Shown here: positions 22,274 to 59,172 of the stretch, one piece after another
Layout of the letters: the number at the start of each line of letters is the position of its first letter
How positions within the stretch are numbered: the stretch's first letter is position 1
Origin: Takakia lepidozioides
Taxonomy: Eukaryota; Plantae; Bryophyta
Direction of reading: 5' to 3'
NCBI GenBank assembly: GCA_030704615.1
Contig: CM060732.1
Span: 76,322,001 to 76,386,000 of the forward strand
Length of the DNA stretch: 64,000 nucleotides
Notes under the pieces: generated by a model
Databases searched by the model: none
What the model was told of the DNA's origin: nothing
Seen by the model: only the letters and a program-made list of their open reading frames with translations
Program-made: the position numbers and the translations under genes

Positions 22274-22304
<31 letters not shown>

Positions 22305-26297: not shown

Positions 26298-29200
26298 ATG
26301 AGCGGTGCAAGGCTTTGCGGAATCTTGGCGGATCTAGGGTATGAGGGTTGGCAGCTGTTGGATGCTGACAGTTTTGAGTGGCCATTCCAGTATGATGATA
26401 CGCGACCGCTTCTGGATTTTCTGTGCACGAATTTGAGGCCATCGAACGTGCTTTCACTTCCGGAGCTTCTGCAGTAAGTGTTGCATGCAAACAGGGCTGA
26501 AATTGCAGTATTATTTCAAATTTTACTTAACTCCATAATTAGTCTGCTCTAAGGGACTCAATAGTCTGTGGCCCAGCTGAGTTCGATGGATCAATGTGAG
26601 CGGAGTTGAGCGGTGTGTTGTGTTTTCCCATGCTTAAGCGGTTTGGGGTTTAGGTCTTCAAGTGACAGCAGAGCAATGCACTTACCAGTTGAGTTGGATT
26701 TCGATTTTATTCCTCTATAGGTCGTGGTGTGAGAATTGTCCGTTGCACTTGTATTGTATCTCAAGCTTCTTTCGAATGGCTTCTACACATATCGGCCTGT
26801 GTCAGCTTGTTTCTCTCCATTTTTGGCAATCTCGCAGTGAATGGCCAGCATCTTTGAATCTGACATTAGCAAAGCTATTGCAGCCCTATGATCATCCATT
26901 CAAGACAGAAGCCTGAGTGTGTGCGGTGTGGGGGTTTGCCAGGTATAACGAGCTTAAAGAAGAGGGAAAACTTCTAGAGGTGAGGGGCTTCTGTCTCCCC
27001 AAGTTTTGAAATAGGTGATGGCTACTTTATTATTTTTTCCAAACAGTGCTGCAATGCTGCCAACCTGGTTGCCATCGCATGAATGTAGATTATCTGGCCT
27101 ACTGCATATCACCTAGATGTGGCCAATAGTAGGAATTGCAGTAGCTGGCTGACCACCGCCGCAATCCCGTGAAAGAGACAAGGGATGACAGAGAAATCAG
27201 CCGCATGCCAGCTGAGGACATTGTTTGTTTCCAGGGAGAGGATCTAGATTTTGCATATGGAAGTATCTCGGCATTTGCAAGCAGACGCTCAAATCAGGAG
27301 GCCATCCTGGGGGCAGAGGAATCTCTCAGAGAAATCAAGTAATAATCCCTTTATTATGTGTGTTTTTCTTTCCCGCCGTCCTCCCACACTTGCTATGGCC
27401 TTCTCTCTGCCAGTCCACTCCTAGTGACATAGAGAGTAGAGCACATGACATAGACATTGTTAGTGAGTAGCGTATCTGTCACTCCCAATCATACCTTCAA
27501 TTAAGCTTAAATGGTCTGCAGATGATTTCTTGGAAGGTGCCCAGATTTCACGAGTATTGATTTCTTGACCTTTTGGTACATACAGAGAGGCGACCATTGC
27601 GTACAAAGCGGAGGCTGTAGGGCTGCAGAAACGGGTTCAGCGATTGCAGTTTCATTTGGAATCTCTGGGAGGTCAGACCTCATCTCTAATACAGGGGCGA
27701 AGAGCCCGGGCAGCAGCAGCATCAGGCACAGCTGGCAATCTCGTGATGGTGGAAGAGAGACTGGCCAGTCGAAATCTGGAGGTGACTTCGTTTTCTAGAG
27801 TTTTGTTTCATAATTCTCTTTCCTGACAGTTTCTGTAAGTGGCTATGCGCATGTCATACTTGGAAATAGCTCCTTAATCCATTGCTACCAGAGCCTTCTG
27901 CCTTCTGTTTTATTTTTTGCCACTGTTGCTTTGCTTGCCAATCCTCTCTGTCTTTCCTTCACAGCGAACATGGAAACCAGCCAATCCTACAAAAAAACTG
28001 CAGTTCAATGGTCAGACATTCTTGGTCCTCCATGACGATAGAAACTTGTGGTCCAATTACCTATCTGCAGCTCTATCTCCCTCTCTTCTAAGGGAACTGG
28101 GGAGGTTTAGGGTGGTCTCCCACAGTCTGCTGATAGAGACTGGTAGGTGGGACAACCTGCAACGTGAGGACTGCCTGTGCCCCTGGCCCACTTGCATCGG
28201 AAACAACAGAGGAAAGTGAAAATTTCTTCTTTCACTGTCCTCTGTACTGTGAGGTCCGTGGGAGATCTATTGTCTATTCCAAGGTACCCAATCTCTCAGA
28301 CATCTTCCATTATGAGGATCCGAAATGCTTAGCAGCATATCTGCATGACTTTTGGACTCTTAGACAATCCCTTGAACTATAGTTGTTTTGGGCTGCTTGT
28401 GGAGGGCTGCTCTCCCATTCTTGTTTCATGCTTTCTCGTCCCATAAACTCGTTGAGCTTTCCGCCGACCGCCAATGTTATAAAGTATTATTTTGTTTCTT
28501 CCTGTGGATGTAAAAGCTTCTTTCATCTCATTTCTTCTTCTTTCTTCTCTATCTTGCTCTCCCTGTCAAAGATGGGGGAGAACTTCAACATATAAGGATT
28601 GTTATGCTGCAAATATAAACTCTGATTGTGGAGCCTGAAGCAAATATCTGAATGATGGTTTGTTTTTGTTCAGATGAACACGGTGCTTGAGAGGTTATCA
28701 TCATCAGCCCGTGAACTGTCTTACTACCATTCTGGAGAAGGTTACCCCAGTGCTGCCCTCTTGCTGTGTTGGCCCAACTCTTACGTTCACCTTTTGTGTA
28801 CTCTCTCTCTATGGCTTTTGTTCCGCTCAAACTGAGCACGGGGTCAATGGCCAAAAGGCTACGGCAAACAACGTCTTATGAGTACATTCTCTCCATGGCT
28901 TTTTGGTATCCATTCATTTTATGTGGTTCAACGTTGATGCACTATATGCTGCACTATGGCCCTTTGAATTCCCCTATATCCAGTGAGTGAGCTTTTTGGT
29001 ACGAAGTCATTTTATCTGTTTCCACATGGACGTGCTATTTGCTGCACTGGGTCCTGTTGAGCAGCATTTTCGGCAAGATTGAACTTCCCTATGTCCAGTT
29101 GTTATAGGCTAGGTTGGTCTCTTCACTCATCGGCTGCACAAATTTTGTGGAACAGAGGATGGGATCTATATTTCATTTGCTGACTTGCGACCATACACCA

Positions 29201-32200
29201 GCCAAGACCAAGCAGGCACCAAAGCACTCAATGAGTGGTTCTCCAAACAGTTTGATGTGGTTTGTATGATAATTTACCAGCAACGGATTTCTTGTAGGAG
29301 GGGTTTGCTGCATTCTTTACCTCCATCTCAACACAGTAGAAGAGAAATATAAACGTGTTGATACTTACAATGAGGAAGAGGAACATGAGGTAATTAATAA
29401 GTAGGTGGATAGACAAACTCCAAGTGGATTAATTGTGTGGCAGGGTCCATCTCGACTTGTTGCTGAAGAAGGAAAATCAAAGTGTGCATGGGTGAGCCTT
29501 GATGATGTGACTAACCGCTTCGTTAGGGGTATACTCTCACTTTCTCACTTTTACTTGCAGATATACTGACTCACCTCATAGAACTGGATTTTGCAGCATG
29601 GTAGCAGTCTTAAGGTTTATTCTTTTACTACATCAAAGCAGACTAGTGAACCTGGTAGGTTTGGTGAGCTTTACCATTTTTATAAAGGGTAGTACTGACC
29701 CTGCGTATTCAGGATTGATGTACAGTTCAATCGGTGTTTTGATGAGAGGGCTGTGTGTCGTTGTACTCAGGGGACTCAGAAAAGACGTATCATCGTCGTG
29801 TGGTGGAGCTTCAACGGCTCAGATCCATGTGGGGTCCTACGGAAGCCTATGTTCTCTGTCTGCTGAGACAATTCGAATAAAATGACAATTTGAATCTGAA
29901 TTAGACAGACAATTGAATAAAATGGCACTGAAAGGTCTCATAGATGGTTCTGAGTTGTGTTAAATTAGCCTAAAGGTTCCAAATCAAGCTGTCTATCCTA
30001 ACAAGTACTGAGGATAAGAGGATGGATGCAATGGCAGCTTTGGAGTAAGTGAGAGACAATGGGTGGAGGCCCATGCAGAGAAGGCAAAGCAACAAGCACT
30101 CCTCGTGACAGTCCAGTCGCAGACCTCAGCTGACCATGCCCATGTCCACTCTGATCTGCAGACTCTTAGGTAGTAGCCTCTCTACCTCTGTCAGTCTGTG
30201 TTGAGGAAATTGTCAATATAGGCCTGCCATCGTACTCAGAAGTAGCTGTCATGCCACATTCCAGCATGCAATAAGAATGTTGGGAATCTCTTAGTTGGGG
30301 TTTGTTGGTGGGAGTACTGTAGGCGCAAGCATACAGATGTTGGGAGTGAACTCTACACCCTCGCTCAGAAAGAGGAAAAACTGCTATCTGAGGTCTCTCT
30401 CTCCTCTCCCTCTCCCCTCCTGTTCCAAGTTCGTCCTCCTACTCTTCCCACTTTGCACAGATGAAGGAATTTGATTTTTGTGATGTATTCAAGTCAGCAT
30501 GTGTCTATCCTGGTCTCGTATTCTGACAATGTATCTATACAGGTCATTCCCAGCCTATGTTGGGAGCTGGCTCAACTGCAGGACACGTACATTCTTCAAG
30601 GTCAGCTACCTACACCTGAGTTCTGTATCTACAAACGCAAATGTGTAGTACTTCACTGAATGAAAAATTTGATTGGAGGTTGAAATCATCACTATTTCGC
30701 TTTAAGCTCTTCGTCATGTAAGCAGCTAGGGCCAAAAGAAATGTCCTGACATCAGTGTTCAATTGCATCAGTGAAGCAGACATCTCTCAATGTACTCATA
30801 AGACTTTGTTTGCCGTAGCCTTGTGGCCATAGACCTGTGCCCAGTTTGGACGGAAACATAGGGAATAGGCACTACCTTGGTGAGGGTCGATGTACCTTGG
30901 TATAAACAGGTAGTCCGGGCTTTATAAAAATTGTCTTAGGGTATCTGGTATTAGGCATGCGATTCAACTGACCACCATCTGACCTTGAATTCATTACGTC
31001 AAGAGCTTAAGGGAGGTATGCCAAACTTGCCCCAAACAGCCACATTAGCTGTTTTAGAGCAAGTTGACATGCTTAGACCTGAATGGATTCTAGAAATTTA
31101 AATGGTTGGAGTTGTTGACCCACACAACAGACACCTTGAGTGAATGTACTCATAAGATGTTGTTCGCTGTAGCCTTGAGAGAGACACCTTGAGAGAATGT
31201 ACTCATAAGACGTTGTTTGCCGTAGCCTTGTGGCCATTGACCCCGCGCCCAGTTTGAGCGGAACACAGGGGGACAGAAACCTTTGTCTGGGGCTGACGCC
31301 GGTAGTATGACTTACCTTCGAACAGACAATTGAAGACACCTTGAGAGAATGTACTCATAAGACGTTGTTTGCCGTAGCCTTGTAGCCAGTGGCCCCGGGC
31401 CCAGTTTGAGTGGAACACAAAGGGACAGAAACTACCTTTTGTCTGGGGCTGACGCTCGTGGTATGACATGCCTCGGAACAGACAATTGAAGACACCTTCA
31501 GAGAATGTACTCGTAAGACGTTTTTTGCCGTAGCCTTGTGGTCGTTGACCCTGCGCCCAGTTTGATCGGAACACAAAGGGACAGAACCTACCTTTGTCAG
31601 GGGCTGACGCCGGTAGTAAGACCTACCTTGGAATAATCAATTGATCCGGGTTTTCCAGATATCCTCTAGAAACCTCTTTACACAAGCATCAACCTGCTGT
31701 GTGTGGTTTGCCCAATAACTAGGCCCCAAAAGGGCCTGGGCTTTTGGCTCAGCCTCGTCAATGTTGGTAAACAGAGATACAGGCAGAATTCCCTCGATGG
31801 ATTTGAAGAGAGCGGCTCTCTGGTGAGAGAACCCCAGACAATGAATCAGAAAACGAATATTCAGGTTGCCCACACAACGGGCAATTGCACTCTCCATTTC
31901 CTCTCTGCTTCTGTTTGCTGTTCAGAGGTAGGCTTCCCGCCCTAAGTTTAAATTTTAGTCTAGTGCCGAGGGTGGGTAGACCCTTGAGGTCATCCATGAT
32001 GTCCTCCCCCATGTCACAGTTCCGGGAAGTTTTCTGCCTAACTTCATTTTCATCAGACTATTTCCTGGCAATAGACATGGCTTTGGACCTACAGCCTCTA
32101 AGTCAGATTTATCCAGCAGGGTCAAGACTTGCGGGCTAAGATTTAGATCCTTGAGAATCTCTTCTAATCTCTTCCGCCAGGACTTAGCCTGTTTGACAGG

Positions 32201-35200
32201 GCGATCCTGGTTCCAAGGTATTGAGTCGACTAACTTAGGATATCTGATGTTGGACATATGTTGCAGCTGACCCCACCATCTAACCTTGAATTCATCTCGT
32301 CGGGAGCTTAAGGAAGGGATGCCAAACTCACAGCCACATAGCTATTTTGGAGCATGCTGACATGCACTCCTTAAGCACCCCCACTTGAATGGATTCTAGA
32401 GACTTGGTTGGAGTTGATCCCTCTGCAGTGGAAAATTTTAGTGAGACCCACTGGTTTGCGCTTGCCAGTTTGAACAACTTTCTGAATATGGGCATCCCAA
32501 TTACAGTTCGAGGAGAACTCAACGTCGAGGTATGTGTAGGAAGGGAGGACCGGTATCTCTTGGCTTCCCTAGTGCCACTTGAGATCACCTCCTCCCTCTC
32601 CTCGGTCGTTGAATGCCACCACTGCACATTGAGAGAGACAAAGACTAAGGAAAGAAGGAAATGCTTTTAAATCCATGGGAGGCCCTAACCATGGGACACA
32701 GTAGAGCAACACGAGCATTTTTTGTCGTGCATGAAAATGACTGATATTCAGTGGTGGGTCCATCAAGGTTTACGATTACTTCATGGAACCTGTGCTTGTA
32801 TTTGGAGGCTTACGCTTGGGCTTGGGCCTCAGGTGATTATGACTTGAAGGTGATGCGGCAAGAGTACTACATCTCCCAGCAAAAGAAGGTCTCTCTCTCC
32901 CCCTCTCTCTCTCTCTCTCATTCACTCACTTCTCCCTGTCCTCTAGGAAGCCTATTGACATTGGGTGGACTTGAAACGGGAGTACATTAATGTCTCTGTG
33001 ACTAAATGCCCGCCTTATGACCTCGTGTTCTTGTTTGTTTCGACCTGAAGCGCTTTGCTTCAGGTAAGGTAGTGCATTGGATTTAGTTGGAAAGCTTGGG
33101 GCCTTTCCCTCTTTAGAATATGCCTACACGGGCCATGCCCTGCAATTCCCTGGAGTGTGATCTCTGAATGGTAACAAGCGGACTCCTACCGCTTGGGGGC
33201 AGCCCCTCCGCCCAAATTGGGCAGTCGTATGCTCTGTCTAGCATACTCGGCACTTGGGCTCGGGTTAGTTCCTGTGCTTAAACTTATGGCCTGCGAAAAC
33301 AATCAAAAATTTAGCTCCTATCAACATCAACACTCCTCAGGGTGATCCCTGGGAATTGGTTACTTATGCCAAATCTAGGGCTTCATGTGTAGTTTTTGGG
33401 GTGAATCCCAGGATGGACGATGTGTCCTTTAAAACTACATGCTCTAGCTTAGGCTTGGATTTCATGGCTAATGGTACCATCTCGAGACTTGATAACAGGG
33501 GTACGTTGAAGGTTGCAATGACTAAAAGTGCTTCTAATAGAGTCCCGCATCAATTCAATCTCAAAGAAGTTCGTCCCTTGACTGGCTGGAGAGCGGTCTT
33601 AGACATTGGTGATTCAATGGGGCGCTCTAGGAAGACAACCAAGGGCAACAACTTCAACTTGAGAGTTTCTAATCGGTTTGATGCTCTGGATGAGGTTGAA
33701 TCCAAACAGCCAGAAGGACAAGATGCCCCTAAGTGTACGGAACCTGAACGTCCTGAATCTGAAGGATTTGGTACTCTGAATGGTTTACCAATCCTCAAGG
33801 TTTACACAAGACGAACAAATTCTATACACGGGGTAATTGTCCCCAAGCCGTCAGATGGACAATCTGTCCCTAAGTGTGCAGAGCCTGAACGTCGTGTAAC
33901 TGAAGGATTTGGTACTCTAAATGGTTTACCAATCCTCAAAGTCTACACAAGACGAGCAAAATCTATACACGGGGTAATTGTCCCCAAGCAGTCTGACGGA
34001 CAATCTGCCCCTATGTGTGCGGAGCCTGTGCGTCGTGTAACTGAAAGATTTGGTACCCTGAATGGTTTACCAATTCTCAAACAAGACGAGCAAAATCTAC
34101 ACATGGGGTAACTGTCCCCCCTTTGCAGAACGGTTGGCCGTCCAGGAGCAATCACAAGCTACCTAGACGACAAACAATTCACACGCAAAGGGCTGGCTTG
34201 CGGCTGGCCACTTTCAACTTCTCAGGGTTGACCAACCAAAGGAAACAACTTGAAGTGGGACAAGTTCTTCAGACTAATGATATTCATATCTGTGCTGGGC
34301 AAGAAACATGGGAAACGTCGGATAAACTGGTTGGAGATGTCATTGGTTATAAATGGGCAGGTAAGATGAGTACTCTCAAGGCAGCCTCTGCCAAACGCGG
34401 TCAAAAAGGGGTCGGATTCTTTGTCCGTGATTTCTTGTTTGACAATTGTGAAATTATCAACAAGGGTTTGAGGTATGAGCATAGTATCTGGCTAAAACTG
34501 AATTTGAAGGGCGGCATGAGTACAAAGGACCTCTTTGTTGGTTGTGTTTACATGCCCACAGAGGGGACCCTTAGCGCTGACGCAGACAAGGCCTTCGAAG
34601 ATGTAAAGCTGGACTGTGCTTCGTTCCTTGCCAAAGGTCAGGTGGTACTATTGGGGGACTTCAATGCCCGGGTGGGCAAAGGGATCTATCAGGACGATAT
34701 CATTGGACCTTTTGGTGAGGACGAGCTGAATTCTAATGGCAGACGGTTAATTAATTGTCTAGAAGAGCTTCAGCTTTTGACCTTGAATAACAGGACAAGA
34801 GGTGACCAAGTGCAGTGGACTCGTGAGAAATCCCAAACTGGGGAACGTTCCATTGTGGACTATATCATAATGGACAAAATTTTGTTCCCCCAGTGTGCCA
34901 ATGTGTTGATCGACAGAACTGATATTGGTACCTCTGACCACTTCCTGGTTTGGACTGAGATCAAAAGGTGTTTTCCCACCCCCAAGAGATCTGTGAAACG
35001 TTCGATTCGGAAGTGGCGCATAGAAAAATTCCACAATGAGGAGGTCAAGGCTGAGTACGTCCAGGCCTTGCAAGAGGCTCTCCCTCATTTTGTCCAATCA
35101 CTCCAAGAACTTCAGTCACGCTCTGTTAACGCAAGAAATGAAGTCGAAAGAGCAGTGGACTCTTGGGAGAGTTTCGTTTCCTCCGTGGCTGACAAGATCA

Positions 35201-38200
35201 TTGGGAGGAAACTAATTGTCTGCGGTAGAGCAGTTAATTGGTGGACTAATGAGATTAAACTCAAGATAGCTGAGAGACGAGCCCTCTATAAAGAGTGCTG
35301 CAATTTGGAAACCAACAGAGAATTGTGGGCGAGGTACTACCAGCTCCGTAAAGATATCAATCAGCTTGTTAGGTCTCAGAAGAAATTATACTGGGACAAG
35401 TTATACAGTGAAATAAACTCAAACCACCATGGTGGTAATGACAAGAAATTCTGGTTGGCCCTTCAACGTTTGTACAAGCCGAAAACCTTTGAAACTCACT
35501 CCTTATCCTTGGCAGAACTTCTAGGTCTAACAGTGAGGGGTCTTCTGCTGAATGGAGGGACACAGTTGGAAAAACTGTTCCTATGATTCAAAACAGCCCT
35601 GATGAACTGGAGTATATTTCAATGGCTTATAATGCTCCCATTAGTTCTTCTGAGATTGTGGAAGCAATTGAACATTTAAATGGATATAAAGCTGGTGGAC
35701 CTGATGGTATTGTCAACGAGCTTATCAAGCACGGTGGCGATCCCATGATAGAGGCCCTAGTTCTCCTCTTTAACCTTATCTGGAAGACTGAAATGATCCC
35801 CTTTTGCTGGCGACAGGGGGTCATTGTCAATCTATACAAGAAGGGTGACAGAGAAGAACCGGGGAACTACCGTGGCATCACGCTCCTCAATGCTGTTGGC
35901 AAGACATTCTGCAGAGTTATAAGTACTCGTCTCGAGGTTGATCTGGAGTCTAGAGGTTGTTTCCACGAAGGCCAAGCTGGCTTTCGGCAAAACAGGGGCT
36001 GTGTGGATCATATCTTCACTCTAAGCCAGATTATCCAGGGAAGGAAAAAAGAAGGGAAACCCACTTATGTCTTTTTCCTGGATGTCAAAAAGGCTTATGA
36101 CACAGTGTGGAGAGATGGCCTATGGTTCCGCCTCTGGTCTTGTGGGATCAAGGGAAAGATGTGGAGAGTTGTCCACAACTTGTATGCTCACACCAAAAGC
36201 TGTGTCACTGTTAACGGACAGAAGTCCAACTTCTTTGACATAGACCAAGGTGTAGCTCAAGGATGTACTCTCTCCCCTCTGCTCTTCAATGTTTTCATCA
36301 ATCAACTCCTCGAGGATGTGGAAAGTGAGGGATTTGGGTTAAGGGTGGGTGATACCACCATACCAGCCCTTATGTTTGCGGATGACTTCGCAGGCATAGG
36401 GGAGACTCCAACCAATCTCCAGGAGTTGATTGATTGCGCGAAGAGATACTTTGATCTTTGGGGGCTAGAGGCTAATGTCAGCAAATGTGCAGTGGTAGCA
36501 TTCAACGACAGAGGAGAGGGAGGAAGTGATCTTAAGTGGCAGTGGGGTAGTCAAGAGATCCCGGTCCTCCCTTCCTACACTTACCTGGGCGTTGAGTTCT
36601 CCTCCAATTGTAATTGGGATGCACATATCCGGAAAGTTGTTCAAACTGGCAAGGGCAAAGCTCTGGGGCTCACTAAATTTTTCCACTGCAGAGGGGTCAA
36701 CTCTGAGGTTAAGAAAACCACGCTTTGTCGTGTTATTAGACCTGCCTTGGAGTACGGATCTGCTATATGGGTTGATAACTCCCAGGCTAAGTCTCTAGAA
36801 TCCATTCAAGTGGGGGTGCTTAAGGAGTGTATGTCAGCATGCTCCAAAACAGCCAATGTGGCTGTTCGGGGTGAGTTTGGCATTCCGTCCTTAAGCTCCC
36901 GACGAGATGAATTCAAGGTCAGATGGTGGGGTCAGCTGCAACATATGCCCAACACCAGATATCCTAAGTTAATCGACTCTATATCTTGGAAACAGGACCG
37001 CCCTGTCAAACAGGCTAAGTCCTGGCAGAAGAGAGTAGAAGAGATCCTCAAGGACCTGGACCTGGATCCGCAAGTCTTGACCCTACTGGATAAATCTGAC
37101 TTAGAGGCTGTAGTGTCCTCAGCCATGTCTGTTGCCATGAGATTGTCTGATGAAAATGAAGTTAGGCAGAAAACTTCCCTGAACTTGTTTCCAGTCTGTG
37201 ACATGGGGGAGGACATCTTGGATGACCTCAAGGGTCTACCCACTCTCGGCACTAGACTGAAATTTAAACTCAGGGCAGGAAGCCTACCTTTGAACAGCAA
37301 ACAGAAGCAGAGAGGAAAGGGAGAGTGCAATTGCCCGTTGTGTGGGCAATCTGAAGACAGTATTCATTTTCTGATACACTGTCCGGGGTTCTCTCACCAA
37401 AGAGACGCTCTCTTCAACTCTATCAAGGGAATTGTGCCTGTACCCCTGTTTACCAACTTTGAAAGTCTCGAGGCTGAGCCAAAAGCCCAGGCCCTCCTGA
37501 GGCCTAGTTTTTGGGCAAATCACACACAGCAGATTGATGCTTGTGTGAAGGGATTTCTAGAGGATATCTGGAAAACCCGGATTAATTCTATATATGGAGG
37601 TAAGTCTTACTACCAACGTCAGCCCCTGACAGAGGTAGGTTCTGTCCCTTTTGTTCCTGCTCAAACTGGGCGCGGGGTCAATGGCCACAAGGCTACGGCA
37701 AACAACGTCTTATGAGTACAATCTCTCTCATTCACCAAGGTATAGCTCAAGTTTTCATTAATCAGATCCTTGATGATGTGGAAAGTGAGGGATTTGGGTC
37801 AAAGGTGGGTGATGCCACCATACCAGCTCTTATGTTTGAGGATGACTTTGCAGGCCTAGGGGATACCCCATCCAATCTTCAGGAGTTAGTTGATTGTGAA
37901 AGAGGTCCTTTGACCTGTGGAGGCTAGAAGCCAATGTTAGTAAATGCGCGGTGGTGGCCTTCAATGATCGTGGGGAGGGAGGAGGGGATATCAAATGGAC
38001 GTGGGGCAGTGAAATCCCTGTGCCCCCTTCCTACACATATCTTGGTGTTGGGTTCTCCTCCAGTTGTAACTGGTATGCCCATATGCAAAAATTGGGTCAA
38101 ACAGCTAAACGCAATGCTAAGAGCATCTCACTCACTTTTTCGACCGCAGAGGGATCAGTACCGAAGTTAAGGACCTGCTTTGCAACATTATTAGGCATAC

Positions 38201-41200
38201 TATCTGACGAATCTGATTTGCGGGATGGCAACTCCAAGTATAGTATCCACACAGCTTTTGGTGGTCAAAGAGAGCATGTCAGCATGCACTAGAACAGCTA
38301 ACGTGGCTGTTCGGGGCAAGTTTGGCATAGCTCCTTGAGGTGAGCTCATGGTCAGATGGCTTAGTCTGTTGAGCTGCACGCCTAATACCAGATTCAAGAT
38401 GATCTACTGGATCTCTTGGAAGCAAGACCATCCTGTTAAACAGGCTGGTGGAAAAGGGTAGAGGAAATTTTCAAGCACCTGACCTTTAGGCAGTAAGAGC
38501 GGACCCTGCTAGATAAAGCTGACTTGGAAGGCCATGTCAGAAGCACGAAGAATGTCCGAACAAAACAAAGTTAGACACGTTTCCAGTTTGTGACATAGTG
38601 CAGACCTTAAGGATGATCTGAAGCGCCTACCTACCCGCGGCACTAGAGTGAAATTGTGGGGGGTCTACCTTTGAACAATAATCAGATGCAGAGAGGAAAG
38701 TTAGATTGTCAATGCCCAATGTGGGGGCAGTGAAGACAGTGTCCTTTTTCTGATACAATGCGAGGTCCAAGTATAAGAACGGCCAGGGAGAAAGAAGGTA
38801 AGAAAGAGACATGCATTCCTTCATGTTCCAACTGGGGTATTCTCATCAGAGAGCACTCCTTATCAGGACCATGAGGAACACAGTCCCTGCACCTCCGTTC
38901 ACCAACTTTCAAAATCTCGAGGCTGAGCCTAAAGCCTGTTGGGTGCAGCTCACACACGGCAGATTGATGCTTGTGTGAAGGGATTTCTAGAAGCAATCTT
39001 GAATGCCGAACCAGTTGTTTATACCAAGGTTAGTCCCATTACTGGAGTGATCTCCTCACAAAGGTAGTGTCTGTTCCCTCTTGCTCCACCCTAACTGGAT
39101 CGATGGCTACAGGCTATGGCAGTCTATTGAGTACTTTCTCTCTACACACACACAGACACACGTACATATGTGTTTTACTTGCTATCGCAGTCAAAAGAAC
39201 CATTTTTAACCCATGGTTGGATTCGCAACAAAAGTCTTGGCATACGTATCTTTGCTTACATGGCTTTTGTGGATGGCCGTGGGAGCTGGGTGTAGTTCAT
39301 AGGTCATCTGGTGGATCAATCAGCAAGGCATCGCTTCCTTCAAGTTGCTTGCCATTTGGAAAAGAAGACAACAAACGGAGCCTATGAGCTGCTGCGCCTT
39401 GTAGAAGCTGAGCTGCAGGCCTACACCTTGAACACTTCAGGGCGCATTGTATGTTACCACTCAAAGCCCTTCTTTCCCCCTTGGTTAGTCTCTATAGGTT
39501 GATTTGTTCTGTGCACCTCTTGACCAACAGTTGCAGATGTGAAATTCTTGTTTTTTTTGCTTGAGATCAGGAATGCACTATTACTCCAGCTTACCCTGAT
39601 CTATGGTGGCACTATTCTCCACATCGACAAGCTCCCAGGGAAGCTTCACCATAGTGTGCACTGGCTAGGATTGGTTGAATGCTGCTGTGAAGGCTGGCAT
39701 ATGAAGCAATAGCATGCACTAGGATACTCCTTCCAACATCGATAATCTGTTAGAGTGACAACAGACCCTGCACTCAAACACAGATCTACATCTATGGTGC
39801 TCGCTGTGAGTCAGTGTAAGTGAAGTGCAGAAGATACAGTGACAACAATTAGAATTTGAAAAGACAAAAGAAACTGGCGACAGACATAAACATTGATGAA
39901 GCTTGGTTCTTCCCATCTCCATCAAATGAACTTGTGAAAGGATGTTTATAACTGTGCGGGGCAGGATCGATGTGTTGCCTTAACACAAGCAGGAGCAGAT
40001 GCACAGGAGCATGGAGCGGTTGATGACCGTGACGCGTTCCTTCACCGAGTCCGTGACTTACTTAATATCCACACACGTATGTCTCTTGCTACCTTTTGAC
40101 GGTCTTTGATGAAATCCTGGGCCCTGAAGATTAAGTAGAGTGCCTTCCCATGCTGAGCACCGGGTGGGAGTTCAATGCTGCCTGCCTCTGGGACGTTAGG
40201 TTAATGCAGCTCAATAAAACGAATTCCTGACGCAGATCTGTGGGCATCTAGGTGAGAAATAGGAGCATGTCTGATGCATTGTAATGGTATTCTCTCAACT
40301 CTCTAAAAGCATGAAACAGACCGTTACTGTACCTCTTTTGCTCACTTCCTGAAAGTTGTTGACCTCCTTCGGTCTGGATTCTGGGGGAATACAGATGGCT
40401 TCTCGAGCAAGCCTGAACCAACTATGTCCTACAGGCAATTCCCATTGCTAGACAGCCCTTCACAATGGTAGTGGGCCTCCTGATGCTCTCTCCCCCCTTC
40501 CCCTCCATTCTTTTCTGCTCCATCCAAACCAAGTGCAGGAACTTGGGCAACATTACAGGGCATCAAATGCTGTCTAACGATCACACAAGCCCTATCTCTC
40601 TCTCTCTCTCTCTAGTTCGGGCAAATCACACACAGCAGATTGATGCTTGTGTGAAGGGATATCTAGAGGATATCTGGAAAACCCGGATTAATTCTTTATA
40701 TGGAGGTAAGTCTTACTACCAACGTCAGCCCCTGACAGAGGTAGGTTCTGTCCCTTTTGTTCCCGCTCAAACTGGGCGCGGGGTCAATGGCCACTAGGCT
40801 ACGGCAAACAACATCTTATGAGTACAATCTCTCTCTAGTTCCCGCTCAAACTGGGCGCGGGGTCAATGGCCACAAGGCTACGGCAAACAATGTCTTATGA
40901 GTACAATCTCTCTCTCTCTAGGTGGCCACAAGGCTACGGCAAACAACGTCTTATGAGTACAATTCTCTCTCTCTAGGTCTCAAGGCTATGGCAAATAGCG
41001 TCTTATGAGTACATTCTCTCTCTCCAGTGCGTCACACCTGCAGCTGAGCTGCGGGGATAAGCTAAATCCTGGTGGATGCGAACCCCACAAGGGCTAGTTG
41101 TTTTCCCCTGGGGTCAATTGCTGGATGGCTGTGGCAAGCCAACGTTCACAGGGAATGGCATGAGTACATTCTCTGCAGTGCGGGGAGTCTACCTGTGAAC

Positions 41201-43315
41201 AATAAACAGAGCCAGAGTGGAAAGGGAGATTGTGATTTCCCGATGTGCGGGCAGCCTGAAGACAATATCCTTGTTCTGGTACATTGTCCGGGGTATTCTC
41301 ACCATAGAGTGGCCCTCCTCCAGGTCCATCGAGAACATTGTTCCTGCACCTCTGTTCACCAACTTTCAAAATGTTGAGGCTGAGCCCTGGCCCTGTTGGG
41401 GTCTAATTGCTGGGCAGCTCACACACAGCAGATTGATGCTTGTGTGAGGGCTTTCTAGAGGAAAGTCCAAACTAGTTGTTTTTATCAAGGTAAGTCCCAC
41501 TACTGGATTGAGCCCCTCACAACGGTAGAGTCTGTTCCCTCTTACTGTGAAAAGCACAACAAGTTGCGACATTCTGGAATGTTGCCCAGGGCGTAGCCTT
41601 GTGCCCAGGGCGCTGGGGTTTCAAACCCCTCTGCTGCCATTATTACTGGGTCCGGCCACAAGGCTACGGTGAACGACGTCTCATGAGTACATTCTCCAGG
41701 TTCTTCCAGGTTGTTGGGTAGCTCACACACAGCAGATTGGTCCTTGTGTGAAGGGCTTTCTAGAGGAAATTTGGAAGCCTGAACTAATTGTTTATATCAA
41801 GGTAAGTCCCATTATTGGAATGAGCCCCTCACAAAGGTAGTTTCCGTTGGCTCTTCTTCCACCCAAACCGGGTGCGGTGTCTATTGCCACATTCCACAGC
41901 AGACAGTGTCTTGTGAGGACATTCTCTCCAGGTTCTTCTACAGGATTGAGCCTTCAATGATAATAGTGGCCCTTCAAACCATAAGTATACTCTCCCCCTG
42001 AGGCCTTGGTTCAACATTGCAGTGACACTTCCCATTGAATACTTCGTGCAGATGAACAAGGAGGTCTGCCAATGTATGTGTCAGCACCAGGCCTAGTGCA
42101 GCAAATAATGCAATTGCAGACTGAGCTACAGGCGCTACAAGATCAGATGCACCATTCGTTGCTCCATGATAAGCACCAATGCATCAATGACCTGTAAGTA
42201 TTCTGCACATTTACTGAGAATACCCTCCCCTTTCCATCGGTTCTTGGAGCTGATTGGCAAGTCTCTTTTCTACCCTCACTGTTTAGAAAGTAGATTGGAT
42301 AATGTCAGACAGTATGCAACCTTCTAAGAAAGGCCAGTCAATCACCCAGGAAACTGTTTTACGGTTTCTAAGTGATTCTGTGTATTGAGGCATGTGAACA
42401 CGGGTCTTTTGAATGTTATTGGACTATGTAATGTAGAGTTGGGTCAGAGTGTGTAGTCCAAGGCACACTCCACTGTGTGCTGGAGAACCCTGCAGTTATG
42501 GCAGGCCCATTGAGATTCTCTGGTAGAGTTCAACCCTTGTATCTCCAACTGTATTACGCCATTTGGAGGATTGGGTTAAATGAACTATGGGGAATTTGCC
42601 CCAAGCCCCTGACATTCCTTCTTACTGGGATCCCTCACACCTTTTTTCTCATGATGTCACAGGTGCCATGTCATCCACAAAATGCAGCAGCTTCTTTTCG
42701 CATCATCAACCACTGCCCAACCAATATTGAGCCCCTGGGTAAATGTTGGTGCTCTTCAATACAACAAGAAAATCTGTTGGTGACATAATTAATTCCAGCT
42801 CTAGTTGTAGTCTTTTGTTGAACTTTTGTACTAGCTGTCTCTGACGCATACACCATTGATTTTGTGTTCGACGTGGTTGCAGCCACTGATGAAAGAGCTG
42901 GGGGAGATGGAAAAGGTGAACTCACAGCTCTCCGCTGCCATTGAAGAGGTTACACGTGAACACCGAGAAAAAGCTGAGGTAAAACCAGCTCATGTGTACT
43001 TGGTCTCAGCTATGTACCTCTTTATTGATTCTTCATCAACTGTAACAAGTCATCAGGTTCAGGGATCAAGTGTCATCTACACAACTATTGTGTTGTTTGT
43101 TGTTAGCTTTTGAGCTTTTAGCTGTTCAGGCTGCACTATGTTGTATGTTTTGTGGCTGTGGGATCTAACAGGGAGTGTTGTCACAGATTGTGAAGCATCA
43201 TCCACATGAAGTTGGACGTGAGCGACAAGTCTTTGTAGACTTTTTCTGTGCTCCAGATCGATTGCGCAGCCAAGTGCGAGAGCTCTCAGCCCGGGTCAAG
43301 GCCCTTCAAACTTAG
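26298..43315 (+). CDS. AUG3: AUGMIN complex subunit 3 (HAUS3 orthologue), 18 exons
   Basis: Exons 26298-26473, 26943-26979, 27235-27338, 27586-27781, 28674-28740, 29156-29259, 29444-29528, 29771-29828, 30038-30169, 30323-30392, 30543-30600, 32833-32888, 39296-39448, 39965-40076, 42052-42194, 42663-42738, 42883-42978, 43187-43315. Starts [28 protein letters not shown], contains [26 protein letters not shown], and ends [28 protein letters not shown]. Confidence 0.95.
27900..28490 (+). mobile_element. 3' fragment of a second, different LINE family in AUG3 intron 4
   Basis: Frameshifted C-terminal LINE motifs [23 protein letters not shown] and [13 protein letters not shown]. The 3' UTR does not resemble the GAGTACA-ended family. 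Confidence 0.75.
28820..28886 (+). mobile_element. Single ~67-nt LINE 3' end at a (TC)n tract in AUG3 intron 5
   Basis: Sequence ttccgctcaaactgagcacggggtcaatggccaaaaggctacggcaaacaacgtcttatgagtaca, flanked by near-duplicates tctctatggctttt / tctccatggctttt. Confidence 0.85.
30790..32630 (-). mobile_element. Stack of five LINE copies, antisense, in AUG3 intron 11
   Basis: A long RT/C-terminal fragment 32630-31505, two ~140-nt units, one ~33-nt unit and an older fragment ~31128-30790. The spacer agacaccttgagaga (or a close variant) recurs at ~31129, ~31182, ~31334 and ~31490. Confidence 0.9.
33356..37715 (+). pseudogene. LINE polyprotein reading frame broken by two frameshifts (ORF pieces 33356-34111, 34123-35586, 35583-37715)
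   Basis: A 7-nt deletion in the third internal repeat (~34080) and a frameshift, probably with a deletion, near 35500 split what reads as one ancestral ORF. Confidence 0.8.
33728..34120 (+). repeat. About three tandem 141-bp (47-aa) repeats in the LINE N-terminal region
   Basis: Units start at ~33728, ~33869 and ~34010 ([47 protein letters not shown]). Confidence 0.9.
37736..39134 (+). mobile_element. Older degenerate 5'-truncated copy of the same LINE family, directly downstream of the full-length copy
   Basis: Colinear with ~36247-37721 but with many stops and indels. Ends ...ttgagtac|tttctctc. Confidence 0.88.
40615..41921 (+). mobile_element. Stack of about eight LINE fragments in AUG3 intron 14
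   Basis: 3' termini (GAGTACA or variant) at ~40826, 40906, 40961, 41013, 41169, 41691 and 41921, each followed by a TC tract. TSDs include tctctctctagttc around the first unit and tctccaggttcttc around the last. Confidence 0.92.
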
Positions 43316-46341: not shown

Positions 46342-47921
46342 TGTTTAGTGTAGATCAGGAATAGGGTGTCGGAGTGCCACATCACCTTCGCCACATCATC
46401 GTAACCACGTTATCATCGTCACGCCAAGTCGTCGTCTTCAACCACGTCATCAATATCGTCGTTTTTCTTAAGAACATGCCCGAAATGCCCGAAAATAATC
46501 GGGATAAATATTTGCAATTGCAGCGGGGAAGGGATGGGATGATGATGTTCCCGCATCCTTGAGCGCGGAGGGGACACACCGATCTCAGAGGGAGATCCTA
46601 CATGGTGGATGCTGCACAACCTTCTTTCATTTCAAAATGGGGACTGGCTGCAGTATTCCAACTCTACAATCCACTCCCAGCACCAAATTCGGCAAGGAGA
46701 GATTCAATTCCCAGATACCCCACTTTGAATGAATCGGATGCAACTACACTGGTGCACTGGCAACATTCTCGCAGATGTGCAGTTGAATAAGAATGGTTTT
46801 TTGAGGTTCGAAGAACAGTTTTAATGTCTCAGGTGTACTTCAACTAGCAATTACATCCCAAAGAAGCATCTTCTATGGAGGGGGCATTCACACCCGCTTT
46901 TAGATGACCCCTGGTTTAACAAACTATCTAGACGTCGATACAATAGTACGTCCTGTACACCGAGATATGACAGAAATGTGAAATGTGCTAAGCAGTTGCA
47001 TACCTGACCACTTGTACTCTGACCTCTCCTTCCACAGACTGCATTTCCATGAAGTAAACTTGACAATGATGCTTCAGTGAGTAAAACGCCTCTTCAGATC
47101 TCAACGCATGAACATGAAAAAGGTGAGGCGTTAGTGACAAAATGTGTTAGGTAGTTACATACGTGAACATTTGCAATGTCGCGGCCTCTCTCAAACTGAT
47201 GTGAACTTGAAATGACCGTTCAATGAACAAACGCCTGTCTAGATCTCAATGCACTGAAATAAAACCACCTGACTCGGCGGTAGAGAGACAGTCAAGATCT
47301 GACCACCATTCGCACTCTTCCTTCTCTCCTGCTCTGCTTCCTTAACTGAACTTTAAAAGAATGCATGAATGAGCAAAGCTCCTCTTCATATCTCAACACT
47401 GAACTCTCTCAACACATTGAAATGAAGAGACACAACCTCTGAGGCGGCGGTAGTGCATGGAATGCGGCGGCTGTTCACTCATACCTAACGCTCCAAGACC
47501 CAAGACCGTTCACGCGTGAAGCCTGTAACCCTCCTGACATGTGCCCATGTGCCCACACTTGCAAGAAGCGGTTGCTTACTTGCCCTAAGAAAATGTGCAC
47601 ACAACCCCGGATAGCGTTTTAGTGAGCGTTTGAACGGTCATAGAACGACTTATGACACCCAGCATTACCCTGTTGTATATCACGTAGAAACATAACATTA
47701 TGTGGGTTATTAGTGGTTGCTTGCACTATGGGTCTTTTGCCCTTGTTTTGTACCCCCTCTCCTTTAGATCGACATAACATATCGTAATCTTGCCCAAAAT
47801 AGATGTTCTTACAGTCAATTTAAAGCCTATCTTACCAGCGTTCAAATGAACTTGAACGGATGAAATCCGTTAAGAAATTCATCCTCTATGGATGAAAACG
47901 TCCTTAAGTGTATGGTCGATG

Positions 47922-48229
47922 GTGAAGAAATACGCATCAAGGTTCAGAGTGTCCTCCCCAGGGTACAGATCAAGCTGCACGATATGACCCTTGTTGTCAC
48001 ATTGAACTCCCCACCACGAGCAGCAATCGACAGTTACCGCCCACCCGCTGATCACATTTTGGCTGTCCTCCGTGATTCCCGCTTTGAACGCCAACAATGC
48101 ATCTCTCTCGGCGGCCAAGCAACTCGTGGCATCAGTGAAAATAATGCGAGAGGTCGGTGCAACGACGAATGAACAGAACAGCAACACTGGTGTACACCTT
48201 GTTTGCCATGGCCTGCCAGTTTGCCCCAT
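47922..48229 (-). pseudogene. Truncated copy of the secreted LRR gene (signal peptide and LRR N-terminal cap only)
   Basis: Near-identical to the first ~100 codons of 60243-59173, then similarity stops abruptly after DAYFFT. Its upstream region 48240-48880 matches 60245-61040. Confidence 0.85.
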
Positions 48230-48929
48230 CTTGTCACTTTGAGCTCCTACATGTAAATTGATTAAGATCGCGAGCGTGCACTTGACGTCTTTCGAGATGG
48301 GTACAGAAACACAGATGTTTAGGGAGATAAGCAGCTGGAAGTGGAGGTGGGGAAAGGAACTGATGAAGGCAGACACATATATAGGGTTTGGCGTGGAAAT
48401 GGTTGACAATCAGACAGTGCCATGGGGAGCTGGAGTTTGTCGTAACTGGAGCAACCACGAAACTGGCTCATACCTCGTCTCCGTCACAGTTGTACGTGCC
48501 TCCTACAAACACGTGCACACGCTCCTTCGTTAAAAAAGTGCATTTCGAAGCGTGTTCCAACGTTCGAACCTCCGTTCGAAGCGTGTTCGACTCCATGTAA
48601 TCATGTTTTGACGGTAGGTCGAGGTTTGGGTAAATTTGATAATTAACAGGGGAACCCTCCCGTTGACTGAATATTTTGGTCAAATTCCGGCAGGCCATCG
48701 CTCGCGGCGCGTCGTTGTTGAAGATACGTACCTAGGTCTAGCAGCGGCAGATTTTCGTTCATCCAAGTGGCACCCAGCAATAGTTTGGTGGCCGATGAAT
48801 GAAAAGCACGAGGAAGCATCCAAAGGATGAAAGACGCGCGAGTGAAGAGCATCTTTCGGGAGGGCCGCCTGCTTTGGTATCCCTCGCGAGCTTCCTGGCC
48901 TCCGGTGGTCTAGCACTTGTTTTTATACT

Positions 48930-51648
48930 TATGGTACATGTGTTCACGTAGAGTCCATCCTTGAACACACTCGAGAAGAGGTGCTATGTACAAGCTTTCC
49001 GTCCGAGATGGCATCATAAACCTTCTGGATCTCCTGTCCAAGGGACACGGTTCTTAGTCCTGACAACAACTGGGTCCAAGCTCTGACCCCACAAACTTGT
49101 AGAGAGGGTACGTTCTGCAGTCATGGATACGGTTGGGCGCTGGAAAAATACCCTCGGAGTCATAGGCTTCCCGGACAAGCGGCACTGCGGTGTTGATGCG
49201 CGGCTTCAATTGCTCCTCAAAGACGGTAATTCGTTGGAAAACAGAGGTAGTCTCGAGTTTCTCATTCTTGGGATTTTTAAGCGCGTACTCCATCAGCACC
49301 TCCCTAAGCTTCTGCATGGTAGGTTTGACTCGTTGCATCGTCCATGTAGCTGAAAACAGTTGGAAATCCACCACACTCAGGAGGTCCTTCTCGCATAAAC
49401 GAGATGACAAAAGCCCGCCACTGCCGTTTGCACTTCTTGGCATACTTGGCGAACAACGAGTTTGACTGTAGACTGGATTGTCTCCTCAATGTGTCGGAGG
49501 TCATTGGGCTGGCAGAGACCAACCAAGAAAGTGGAACTCATGAGTTTCAATGGTTTAATGCATTCAGGACTCTTGCTGATCACCCTATGCCCAGTGAATT
49601 CACGTCCTGGTTATGCTGCTCGGCACACTGCACGTGGGTGGTCACTGGGTTGGCCAGATAGTTAAGGTCAGAGAGATAAGACGCCATAGCTATCTCCCCA
49701 TCCTTCATCCCATAGTACTGCACCCTACTGCCATAGAACTGCAACAGATTGCGGGATGATCTAGGAGTTGAGTGATTAATGTTATTAATTACTCAACTTC
49801 TAGATCATCCCGCAATCTGTTGCCTCTGGTGAATTTCCACCTGTATGTGAGCCAACGAAGTCAAGACACCCCCTACCCCTCGAGCTCACATACTGGTGGT
49901 AATTTGTCCAGACGCAATCGATGTACGCAACTACAATCCGACTCCTGCTAGACTCCTTCTACTCAGTTGTAAACAACTAAGTTCAACTAGCAAACTTTGA
50001 GTTTATATAGTACTTACCTGTAGACCGTTTTTGTGAAGCGTTTGATGCACGGCCATCAAATATATTGGGCCTCCCTCGAGCCTACATATATATATATATA
50101 TCGGATAGTTCTTACCTGCAGACCGTTGGTACTATTTGTGAAGCTTTTGATGCACGGACATCTTTTATCGGAAAAGCTAAAAATACTCCATGGTTGTCAT
50201 ATGTGGATTTCTCAACAGATAAATCATTATATTTTTGGTTTGTTGCTATCGGCCTGGCTGCACCCTTAACCATGCATTCACTTCCTCCCACTCTCATCTG
50301 CACATGTGCTTGGACCACAGATGTATTGGGTCTACATAAGGGGGCAAGGTTCCAGACGCATGCTTGTGAAATGCTTCGTAAAGAAATGAAAAATTATTCG
50401 TCCGACGTAGGAGTTATATGACACAGCGTGTTGGTGTACTCTGGAACGTCATTATAGAGGATCTGGGAAAGAACAAGTTTATGCGCCACACACTGGAGAT
50501 GTAGCAGGCTTTTCTTTTCCACGGAAGCTGGGTGGTCTATCCTAAGGATTACGATCCCAGGTTTATATATGTAAATGAAGGAGGGAAATGACACTGCATA
50601 TGTGGAGGGTTCAAGAAGGTGGTAGCAGCAACTATGTGGAGAGTAGGGTGCGAAGGCCTTCCTCCAAGGTAGGCGTGGTGCTCAGAACTCGCTCCTGAAG
50701 ACTGAGGAGAATCTAGAGATTAGGGCTTTGAATCTCCACTACATTTAACAGATCACTCCGACGCCTGGGCTCTTGAGCACTTTCTGCTGAGAAATTAATG
50801 TGAGAAAAAAAACAAGAGGAGGTTGTTCGAGGAGTGGCTGGGGTTAGGTCCTCCGCTCAGATGTGAAGGCAGCCCGTTGTTGTAGTAGTCATTGACAAGC
50901 TCGGAGAATTGTGTAAACATCAGCTTTCCAATCGCAGCAATTGCCAAGCGCATGTTATCCATAGACACTCCGACAGGGGTTCCCTGGAAGTTTCCACCAT
51001 GAAGGGCTCTGTTCCCACCAGCATCAATGATTGGCTTGTCGTTCACGGAATTGATTTCCCTCTCAAGAGCGTGAGTGGCAGTGCGAATGGCCTCGACCTA
51101 GACAGAATACATTCATGAACAATGTTTTAGTTGCTGGGCTATTCAACCACCAAGCGGAACGGAGACCTCAACGACTAATTAAATTTCTGAGTAATGTTCG
51201 GAAGCATAATTGTCGCGATCCGCTCAGACAAGCTCGTATTCAAAAACAGTATGTGCTCAAGGCATATAACTTTCCGCTTTGAGATGGACCGTACCTGCGG
51301 ACCCAGCCATTGTGAAGTGCGCAGCGCTTGTCGAGCTTGGACCATCGAGGATCCACTCCATGATGGCTGCTGCCTCCATCTGACCTGGTTGGTGCTTTAG
51401 CTTGTGTGTCAAGGGGTGAGCGAATTCCGGTTTTCGTTGCATCAACTCACAGAGTAGGACCAGGACGTTGGCATCGTAACAAACAGTGGATGCCAACGCT
51501 GACCCTACTGCCGTTCTGTTAACGAGGGCCAGGCCTCCTTTGGCTGCAGCTCAAAGGGCCACTCCACCGATAGCGAGAGCTTCTAGGGCTGAAATCTCCT
51601 CTCCGTCCTCTGTGATAGCTACGGAGTTGGCCCTGGCAGTAAGAAGAC
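48930..51648 (-). pseudogene. PAL: Phenylalanine ammonia-lyase pseudogene, fragmented and lacking its 5' part
   Basis: Motifs [140 protein letters not shown]. It has several frameshifts and deletions, one GT-AG intron (~51292-51098) and a ~1.1-kb interruption (~50835-49720). No ASG/MIO exon was seen. Confidence 0.9.
49741..49823 (+). repeat. 40-bp near-perfect inverted repeat (hairpin) with a 3-nt loop
   Basis: Arms 49741-49780 and 49784-49823. The only two mismatches are G:U pairs on the plus strand. Confidence 0.9.
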
Positions 51649-52478
51649 CTGTGCAATTGCACGGTATTCTTAGTGATACAAATGACATAATTAAAGAATT
51701 ATGATAATTCATGAATCGTAGATGGCTGCCTGTGTAGTGCATGTTGCAGGTAGGGCGTTGCCGTCCGCCCCCCTTCCATGAATGACTCCTGCATTCAGCA
51801 ACCTGAATCACATGCACATGGCATCCTGTCAATGAACTGATCATCGAGATAGTGATTTAGGGTGCAATCCCCACTTGATCTAGCATTTACCTTCCTGGGT
51901 ACCAATATGGCACAAGTGTGTGCAGGTCATGAGTCTGCTTGTCTTACAATTTTCTTTCAAGAGATAGATCAATGAAGTCACTGAGGTGGACCTTTGGAAA
52001 CGTGATTTGCTTCGCATTATGCCAGTGAAGCTCTCTCCGTGCGTTATTGAGAATCCAGTCGTGGAATAATCGTACTCTAATTTGCAATCTATTCTTCCAT
52101 GATGAGAGGCGGTGCTCATGATTATCATTTTGGTTGGGTAAATTGGTGAGCATTGAACTCGAAGATTTTCATGTTGTCTATCATGTGAATGCTGAGGGAG
52201 GTGAAAGAGGGTGCTCAGCTCAAAGTGATCGTTCCAATGGAAGGAACACTGGCACATTTAGATGCCTTCACTCTAATCAGCGCTCCTCTTGAAGTCAATA
52301 TCTGTCAGCCCCATTTACGTGCAGGAATGACTTCGGTGTCTCGAGAAACAATGTCGGGCAGTTGCTAGCTCCAAAGGTGCTTGGAAGCTGTCGACCTCTC
52401 TCTCTCTCTCTTTTAATCTCCTGGCAAAGCTCCCCACTCTGTTAGGAATGCCTGGATATTAGTAATAAAGGGATAATT

Positions 52479-52620
52479 CTTTTTAATAAAGGGGAATACC
52501 CGGGAGCGACTGCTCACAAATCAGGCCCTTATACCACACCCGACAAAGTAGCAAGATTTCAACCCTGAATCACCTGGGTGCCACCGAGTGCTCTGCTCTA
52601 TCCACATGAGCTACCCACTG
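52479..52620 (-). mobile_element. tRNA-derived SINE-like element downstream of LRR copy 2
   Basis: A-box-like tagctcatgtgg, B-box-like ggttgaaatct, a non-tRNA body and an A-rich tail. Paralogous to 58841-59086. Confidence 0.6.
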
Positions 52621-52688
52621 GTGGTAAAATTTTAAATATAGGACGGACACCTCTACTACAGATGGGTACTTACCTACCTCCATCTGGA

Positions 52689-53777: not shown

Positions 53778-54289
53778 CTTGTCGCTTTGAGCTCCTACGT
53801 AAAACGATGAAGATCGTGAGCGTGCCACTTGACGTCTTTGCAGTTGGGTACAGAAACACGGATATACGGTGGCAGCATAGTAGCAAGAAGGAGAGGAAGA
53901 CAAGCAGCTGGAAGTCGAGGAGGAAAGGGAACTGATGAAGGCAGACATATAGGGTTTTGCGTGGAAAAGGTTGACTATTGGCAAGGACGATCACACAGTG
54001 CGCCATGCGGAGCTGCAGTTTGTCGTAACTGGAGCGAAGTAAGGTTTTCTGGGGCTCATAACTCAGAGGGTGTTCACGGTCGGTTGAGGTTGGGTAAAGG
54101 CAAGTAAAATTGATGACAGGGGAACCAGGGTCCCGTTGACTTAATAGTTTGGTCAAACTCCTGCAGGCCATGGCTGGCTGTGCTTTAATGGAGAGTGCGT
54201 ATGTGGTATGTAGTCTTGGACCTACGCGGCCGCGAGTAGGCACTAGGCATGACTTCAGATGGTTAAGACAAATTACACTCACTCACTGA

Positions 54290-59086: not shown

Positions 59087-59172
59087 GGTAGTAAAATGTT
59101 AAATATACGACGGAGCCCTCTAGTGCAGATGGGTATTTGGCTCCCATCTGGATTGCAAACATTCCGAGCAGA

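Follow-up and report, generated by a model that had tools for sequence, protein, structure and literature searches.

How does a single short dinucleotide tract come to be followed by a row of retrotransposon 3' ends that all read in the same direction? The question is raised by a 64-kb window of DNA from the bryophyte Takakia lepidozioides (contig CM060732.1, positions 76,322,001 to 76,386,000), in which a (TC)~10 tract precedes seven clear, 5'-truncated 3' ends of long interspersed nuclear elements (LINEs), called U1 to U7 as units of the main array, and a tentative eighth, U8, all on the + strand and together occupying 40595-41989. Coordinates throughout are positions within the window. We propose that the array probably arose by repeated, independent target-primed reverse transcription at this one TC tract by a LINE lineage of the RTE-X type, insertion itself being read from its structure. 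The limits of the units listed here come from BLAST against a full-length copy of the element (FL) and from a profile search built from LINE 3' ends.

32926-37721, + strand: FL, the full-length reference copy, with three open reading frames (ORFs) in three frames, inserted at (TC)8 with the duplication tctctctcattcac
40384-40585, + strand: U0, an old, strongly diverged LINE 3' end (nhmmer E=6e-9; 0 of 500 shuffles gave as good a local alignment)
40595-40612, + strand: the (TC)~10 tract, the still-intact target (found by TRF, Tandem Repeats Finder)
40619-40827, + strand: U1, a 209-nt 3' end of the young subfamily, ending ACAA (BLAST, profile, and a 14-nt duplication at 40605/40828)
~40838-40906, + strand: U2, a 3' end of about 69 nt, young subfamily
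40923-40963, + strand: U3, a 40-nt 3' end with tctctctctctagg on both flanks
~40976-41014, + strand: U4, a 3' end of about 38 nt from another subfamily, ending ACAT, with 4 mismatches in 35
41031-41169, + strand: U5, the 3' end of a second RTE-X-like family, its ORF end followed by GTACA; terminus GGCATGAGTACA
41179-41692, + strand: U6, a 514-nt copy of an old subfamily (BLAST and profile)
41707-41922, + strand: U7, a 216-nt copy of an old subfamily, ending GTGAGGACA, with flanks tctccaggttcttc
~41929-41989, + strand: U8 (tentative), a very old LINE fragment

A preliminary description of the locus had counted about eight LINE fragments lying head-to-tail at the TC tract, and this count is borne out by the seven clear ends and the tentative U8. 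The units of the array terminate in ATGAGTACA (in U7, GTGAGGACA), followed by A or T and then TCTC; the base after ACA is A in U1 to U3 and FL, and T in the other units. With up to 3 mismatches allowed, the window holds 12 matches to a 30-nt terminal motif where 0 are expected, and four of these matches are U1 to U4. The profile covers 40617-40826 in U1, 40832-40905 in U2, 40923-40961 in U3, 40977-41013 in U4, 41407-41544 and 41618-41691 in U6, and 41710-41921 in U7. Identity to FL is 97.2% for U1, 93.5% for U2, 100% for U3 (over 40 nt), 90.9% for U4, 74% for U6 and 74.4% for U7, U5 belonging to a different family with a second copy at 22320-22415 on the minus strand. Hence the unit nearest the tract is indeed almost identical to the 3' end of the young full-length copy, as had been noted. 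The companion claim, that units further downstream are mostly more diverged, is true at the coarse level of U6 and U7, but no finer ranking emerges, with U3 at 100% and U2 at 93.5%. For U8, shuffled sequences scored as well in 15-19 of 500 trials with two of four references (p about 0.03) and in 95-164 of 500 with U7 and a copy labeled S4old; it also falls in repeat family D8, where 14 of 15 bases match U6.

The evidence for insertion lies chiefly in the flanks. Scripted comparison of the right flank of each unit with the DNA just before its 5' end recovered exact 14-nt duplications around U1 (tctctctctagttc, the left copy being 40605-40618 and the right one starting at 40828), U3 (tctctctctctagg, with tctctctctagg at 40911 and 40966) and U7 (tctccaggttcttc, with caggttcttc at 41697 and 41929). 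Around U5 the duplication is 12 nt with 1 mismatch, tctct(c/g)cagtgc, its cagtgc lying at 41025 and 41176. The four repeated flanks quoted in the preliminary description are therefore exact or nearly so. Outside the array, the duplication of FL is likewise 14 nt and exact, and an isolated copy at 28813-28886 shows one of 16 nt with 1 mismatch. When the count begins just after the terminal A/T, the lengths fall mainly at 12-16 nt. In U1, U3, U5 and U7 the duplicated DNA consists of TC units and 4-10 unique bases, including the first bases of the next downstream unit; the LINE-derived bases so captured are gttc of U2, g(g) of U4, tgc of U6 and, in another stack of the window, taaacc. U2, U4 and U6 have only TC units plus "tag," "yag," or "cag" in common with their left flanks. 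A YAG follows every TC run of the main array (tag at 40613, 40836, 40919 and 40974; cag at 41025, 41176, 41697 and 41929).

The junctions are equally uniform. Among the roughly 18-20 LINE 3' ends counted in the window, 16 are followed by A/T and then TCTC, to be compared, for one window only, with the criterion of more than 20% repeat-flanked copies used in PMC4494074. At each junction, ACA is followed by A or T and then by TCTC, never by CTCT, which points to a fixed phase of the cut or join. TC also precedes the 5' end of every unit whose duplication is defined, and the right-hand TC run is no longer than the left-hand one in every scorable unit except U7. Because of this relation and because the total duplication length is nearly constant, target duplication is favored over a (TC)n tail carried by the element itself, a candidate that was considered and judged less likely. 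A fold of the last 89 nt of the element is no better than that of shuffled sequences (z = -0.22), giving no evidence for a 3' stem-loop.

Three further stacks are present in the window: two on the minus strand, and one in which FL adjoins an old copy on the upstream side of the latter.

30791-32630, - strand: second stack, four units (S2A to S2D), each with the 14-nt duplication tctctcaaggtgtc or a near copy of it, and an older unit, S2E
21798-23478, - strand: third stack, four units with TC tracts between them, the duplication of the top unit, tctctctctctaaacc, including the 5' bases of the next unit
37747-39135: the old copy adjoined by FL
28813-28886, + strand: the isolated copy, 72 nt, its 16-nt duplication made of TC units and atggctttt

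The target tract of the second stack is only TCTCTC, and the four units accumulated there indicate that short TC runs are real targets. At S2E (30791, minus strand), a GA-type flank, TTGAGAGATG, follows the 3' end; this copy is one of two exceptions to the TC rule in the window. In the third stack, the minus-strand copy at 22432-23478 shows two irregularities, at 22620-22689 and 23013-23100: a segment of about 70 nt matches FL in the opposite orientation, suggestive of a small in-place inversion, and about 86 nt are inserted between its two BLAST pieces.

A row of similar units could also be produced by local tandem duplication, in which replication slippage or unequal crossing-over between the flanking direct repeats would have multiplied one or two insertions. 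TRF does report periods of 79 and 56 nt at 40759-41024, the final 56 nt of U2 plus flank recur as U3 plus flank, and in the second stack the 5' ends of S2B and S2C fall at one and the same LINE position while one 14-nt flank is common to all four units. Nevertheless, we consider this explanation unlikely. The units of the main array range from 33 to 514 nt and belong to mixed families and subfamilies, and their neighbors are not their closest relatives. Thus, U1 and U2 are 94.2% identical to each other, versus 97.6% (U1) and 95.7% (U2) to FL in the same comparison; U3 is 97.4% identical to U2, versus 100% to both FL and S2C; and U6 and U7 are 73.4% identical, versus 79.1% between U7 and the copy S3old. 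In no neighboring pair of the main array does the identity between the two members exceed that of either one to copies at other loci. The differences among U1 to U3 are all private, U4 ends in ACAT where U1 to U3 end in ACAA, and in the second stack S2C is closer to S3top (93.3%) than to S2B (90.0%). Further, the tagttc to the left of U1 holds U2 bases that do not adjoin U1, which duplication leaves unexplained. The preliminary description had named neighbors more alike than dispersed copies as the mark of tandem duplication; the comparison was made, and the neighbors proved to be neither closest relatives nor equal in length. Given the unlike lengths and families and the distance between neighbors, independent insertion explains the array better. 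The units belong to at least three families or subfamilies, and at least six of them must be separate insertions. The lineage responsible is, as we read it, at least two families and several subfamilies with the common terminus ATGAGTACA.

The same mixture bears on the idea of one complex event, in which a single retrotransposition with repeated template switching would have produced several 3' ends together. There are indeed very short units (33-40 nt) next to one another, the LINE positions at which U3 and U4 begin differ by no more than 1-2 nt, and S2D begins about 6 nt further in. Such an event would nonetheless have to yield units of different families whose identity to the young copy spans 100% to 74%, and the unique flank bases duplicated around single units call for a separate staggered cut per unit. 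We find this explanation exceedingly improbable and have set it aside, the mix of ages and families ruling it out.

If the units are separate insertions, the bases captured in their duplications can tell which came first. The tagttc to the left of U1 includes gttc, the start of U2, where the LINE reads tttGTTCCCGCTC; the presence of these bases of U2 inside the duplication of U1 implies that U1 is the younger. Similarly, the first g(g) of U4 is found within the tagg that flanks U3, the tgc with which U6 begins is part of the cagtgc on either side of U5, and U8 probably begins within the caggttcttc that flanks U7. A second marker is the YAG itself: tag around U1 to U3, as against cag after U4 to U7, makes U1 to U3 younger than U4. 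The simplest history would be a single C>T change in the copy to the left of U4 that was passed on to the duplications of U3, U2 and U1. Taking these findings together, U1 is younger than U2, U1 to U3 younger than U4, U5 younger than U6 and, tentatively, U7 younger than U8. In every relation that can be read, the upstream unit is the younger one. The third stack agrees, as the duplication of its top unit includes taaacc of the next unit, and so does FL, which lies directly upstream of an old copy 70% identical to it. Such nested duplications are a rare sequence-internal means of ordering some insertions without a molecular clock.

Several points weigh against the account of independent, ordered insertion. 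U3 could be a 56-nt local duplication of the end and flank of U2, in keeping with the TRF period of 56, and S2B and S2C have a common 5' end along with some common variants. Three of the seven adjacent pairs have no readable order: U2/U3, U4/U5 and U6/U7 fit either order equally, because the short TC run behind each unit is also usable as a target and a copy entering it leaves no distinct trace. U0 is old and yet lies on the upstream side of the tract, and the whole sample is one 64-kb window. Further, the third stack has long TC tracts also inside the array, which counts against a strict tape, and divergence over 33-77 nt is too short to rank U1 to U4. Hence the chronological order claimed in the preliminary description survives in the direction of each readable relation, but not for the three unordered pairs or for U0. 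The array appears to be polar as a tendency and not as a rule, a strict chronological tape cannot be shown, and the comparison drawn with polarized CRISPR spacer acquisition serves as a picture only.

We propose the following series of steps, the sequence itself showing no more than their end products. The endonuclease would nick the GA strand within the tract at a constant phase, and cDNA synthesis starting at the nick would often abort after 35-210 nt, giving 5'-truncated units. The second strand would be cut about 14-16 nt downstream, past the end of the tract; the duplicated target would hence comprise 4-12 nt of TC and 0-10 unique bases. In this scheme the whole tract would survive upstream of the new copy, and the next insertion would land between the tract and the previous copy, so that its duplication can include the first bases of that copy. 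Newer copies would tend to adjoin the tract and older ones to lie further downstream, although the order would be a tendency, since the short TC run behind each copy would also be a target. The scheme retains the earlier proposal of independent target-primed insertions that duplicate TC units and a few downstream bases and regenerate the tract beside the newest copy; it departs from it in the position of the cut, which is placed 4-12 nt inside the tract and not at its 3' edge.

Where the tract itself came from is a further matter. One possibility is that it was not a host microsatellite but grew from the TC run of an earlier LINE (U0 or U8), with later copies homing to resident TC ends in the manner of Zepp elements. 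The 3' end of U0 is only 9 nt upstream of the tract, and TC follows LINE 3' ends through much of the window, in the proportion given above. The distribution of copies points the same way: the window holds 77 TC runs of at least 6 bp, most of them empty, and its approximately 20 LINE 3' ends lie in only five loci, each insertion adding a TC run. Relatives, moreover, end in other simple repeats, namely, (TTA)n in three sequences (L002 to L004) and (C)n in Ectocarpus. Conversely, the isolated copy and FL have TC on their 5' sides without a LINE upstream of it, the right TC runs are not longer than the left, and the nearly constant duplication length requires no element-borne tail. We regard such self-seeding as conceivable but somewhat doubtful, and in any case as a variant of repeated insertion at TC rather than an alternative to it. 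The degree of stacking is far beyond random use of TC runs and fits either local TC feedback or a preference for particular loci.

The element behind these insertions is known in the window from FL, whose coding regions are as follows.

33356-34111, + strand: first ORF
34123-35586, + strand: endonuclease (EN) ORF
35583-37715, + strand: reverse transcriptase (RT) ORF

Pfam searches of FL identified an APE-type endonuclease domain (Exo_endo_phos, 3.6e-7) and a reverse transcriptase domain (RVT_1, 5.7e-34); the first ORF has no Pfam match. This ORF has an internal tandem repeat of about 141 nt (33702-34119), with 86% identity between copies. The stop of the EN ORF overlaps the first ATG of the RT ORF (ATGA, 35583-35586), a point that no other copy in the window spans. 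Ectocarpus RTEX-2 is annotated as having a "single EN-RT ORF w/ frameshift in consensus" (PMC12477816), and the frame shift between EN and RT in FL may be a family trait rather than damage. The stop of ORF2 is a TGA within the terminal ATGAGTACA, with TC next, leaving a 3' untranslated region of about 5 nt.

The RT ORF and the Ectocarpus protein P0010 are 41% identical at 96% coverage (E=5.4e-161). The C terminus of P0010 matches the published text of the RTEX-1_Ec32 protein, and a C-terminal motif, G-x-VNG-x-x-A, is common to all hits. In an Atlas feature search, a "Transposon TX1" cluster comes up only at rank 13. The protein matches to Ectocarpus make the element RTE-X-like in all likelihood, with Ectocarpus RTEX-1 as its best labeled relative. 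The ends of the relatives offer a parallel. Those in L002 (7870-7900), L003 (10845-10875) and L004 (10750-10780), with 45-52% protein identity, end in TGA GTA (TTA)4-5, and L003 carries SRCR and LDL-receptor genes, pointing to an animal source; the Ectocarpus copy ends in TAA GAGTAC GCCAA (C)6. On the Ectocarpus contig CACKRE030000925.1 (L005, 7020-7150), two direct repeats of about 58 nt with (C)8 between them come right after the RTEX-1 3' end and its (C)6, in a stack-like arrangement. The terminal 30-mer, with three degenerate positions, has no match in the metagenome contigs scanned. A wider scheme, which we offer as speculation, is that RTE-X LINEs across kingdoms might keep a GAGTA(C) terminus after the stop and differ in the repeat that follows, (TC)n in the plant, (TTA)n in L002 to L004 and (C)n in Ectocarpus. 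What decides the target would then be a short, swappable match of the nicked site with the element end, insertions would renew and multiply the target, and the mostly polar stacks in introns could be read as a relative clock of subfamily succession.

Within the array, U6 has an extra segment at about 41544-41617, amounting to some 75-110 nt that other copies lack and occurring once in the window. It holds TGCCCAGGGCG twice (41583 and 41602) and a T-arm-like GGGGTTTCAAACCCC; a search of 40500-42000, this segment included, found no tRNA (ARAGORN) and no credible Rfam match. A likely exon (42054-42192, + strand), predicted from an open frame with an acceptor-like gcag and a donor-like gtaagt, lies some 65 nt downstream of the array; this would place the stack in sense orientation near the 3' end of a putative intron. 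As each unit adds a pyrimidine run and a YAG, an effect on splicing is possible. Farther away, a cluster of leucine-rich repeat (LRR) receptor-like genes with plant-type LRRNT_2 and LRR repeats occupies 47879-60243 on the minus strand (47882-48409, 52692-53984 and 59176-60243), and the best same-length hits of these genes are to Sphagnum and Diphasiastrum, at about 50% identity. On these grounds a brown alga, to which the first protein hits had pointed as the host, was rejected. These plant genes and the 41% identity to the Ectocarpus RTE-X protein uphold the earlier view of a plant element of the RTE group.

Among known systems, the closest parallel in target is Kibi, a (TC)n-specific LINE of teleost fishes from the Tx1 clade, other microsatellite-specific LINEs being Koshi, Waldo, Mino, Dong and Togen (PMC3812793, PMC4494074, PMC4640811). 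Like Kibi, the present element is a LINE of the APE type that enters TC repeats in one orientation and has TC on both sides of its copies. It differs in having a land plant as host, in having RTE-X (Ectocarpus RTEX-1) and not Tx1 as its best labeled relative, in the ORF2 stop within the terminal 9 nt without an A-rich tail, and in the sufficiency of a bare TCTCTC as a target. In sequence, the nearest relatives are RTEX-1, RTEX-2 and RTEX-N1 of Ectocarpus, which resemble it in the RT ORF, in the G-x-VNG-x-x-A motif and in a GAGTAC just after the stop that leads into a simple repeat. Their annotations record "(C)n termini/TSD," "C-rich" duplications and, for RTEX-N1, that it "can be present in tandem" (PMC12477816, supplement 3). 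There, however, the repeat is (C)n and not (TC)n, the host is a brown alga, and nested duplications or ordered stacks are not described (PMC12477816). Tandem insertion of target-specific retroposons is also known from the crocodilian SINEU-3 and Tx1-Mar, whose tandems "sandwiching a TSD" (target-site duplication) are read by the author as sequential insertions (PMC4494074); these have a Mariner transposon as target and form two-copy tandems, as opposed to the stacks of 7-8 here, and their order is not read from nested duplications. In plants, the SaTar arrays of Mutator-like elements (MULEs) in guayule and rice are microsatellite-targeted, linear, non-nested arrays of unrelated elements joined by microsatellite (PMC5907723). 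They too are plant transposons directed to microsatellites and built into arrays, but they are DNA transposons with a proposed recombination mechanism, without fixed orientation or polarity and without 5' truncation.

In telomeric HeT-A/TART arrays, LINE copies accumulate at one place, growing at a free DNA end. In the Zepp clusters of Chlorella and Coccomyxa, LINE copies pile up at one place by inserting into or beside earlier copies, but the clusters are nested and occur once per chromosome (PMC3446292). Nothing in the literature searched describes a land-plant LINE that targets microsatellites, or an RTE-X element with a TC target; if this holds, TC targeting arose independently of fish Kibi. 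Sequential tandem insertion by target-specific retroposons and the building of plant transposon arrays on microsatellites have both been published (PMC4494074, PMC5907723). A target-regenerating retroposon that piles up in tandem is already known, and the array is a tidy example of that behavior, not a new mechanism.

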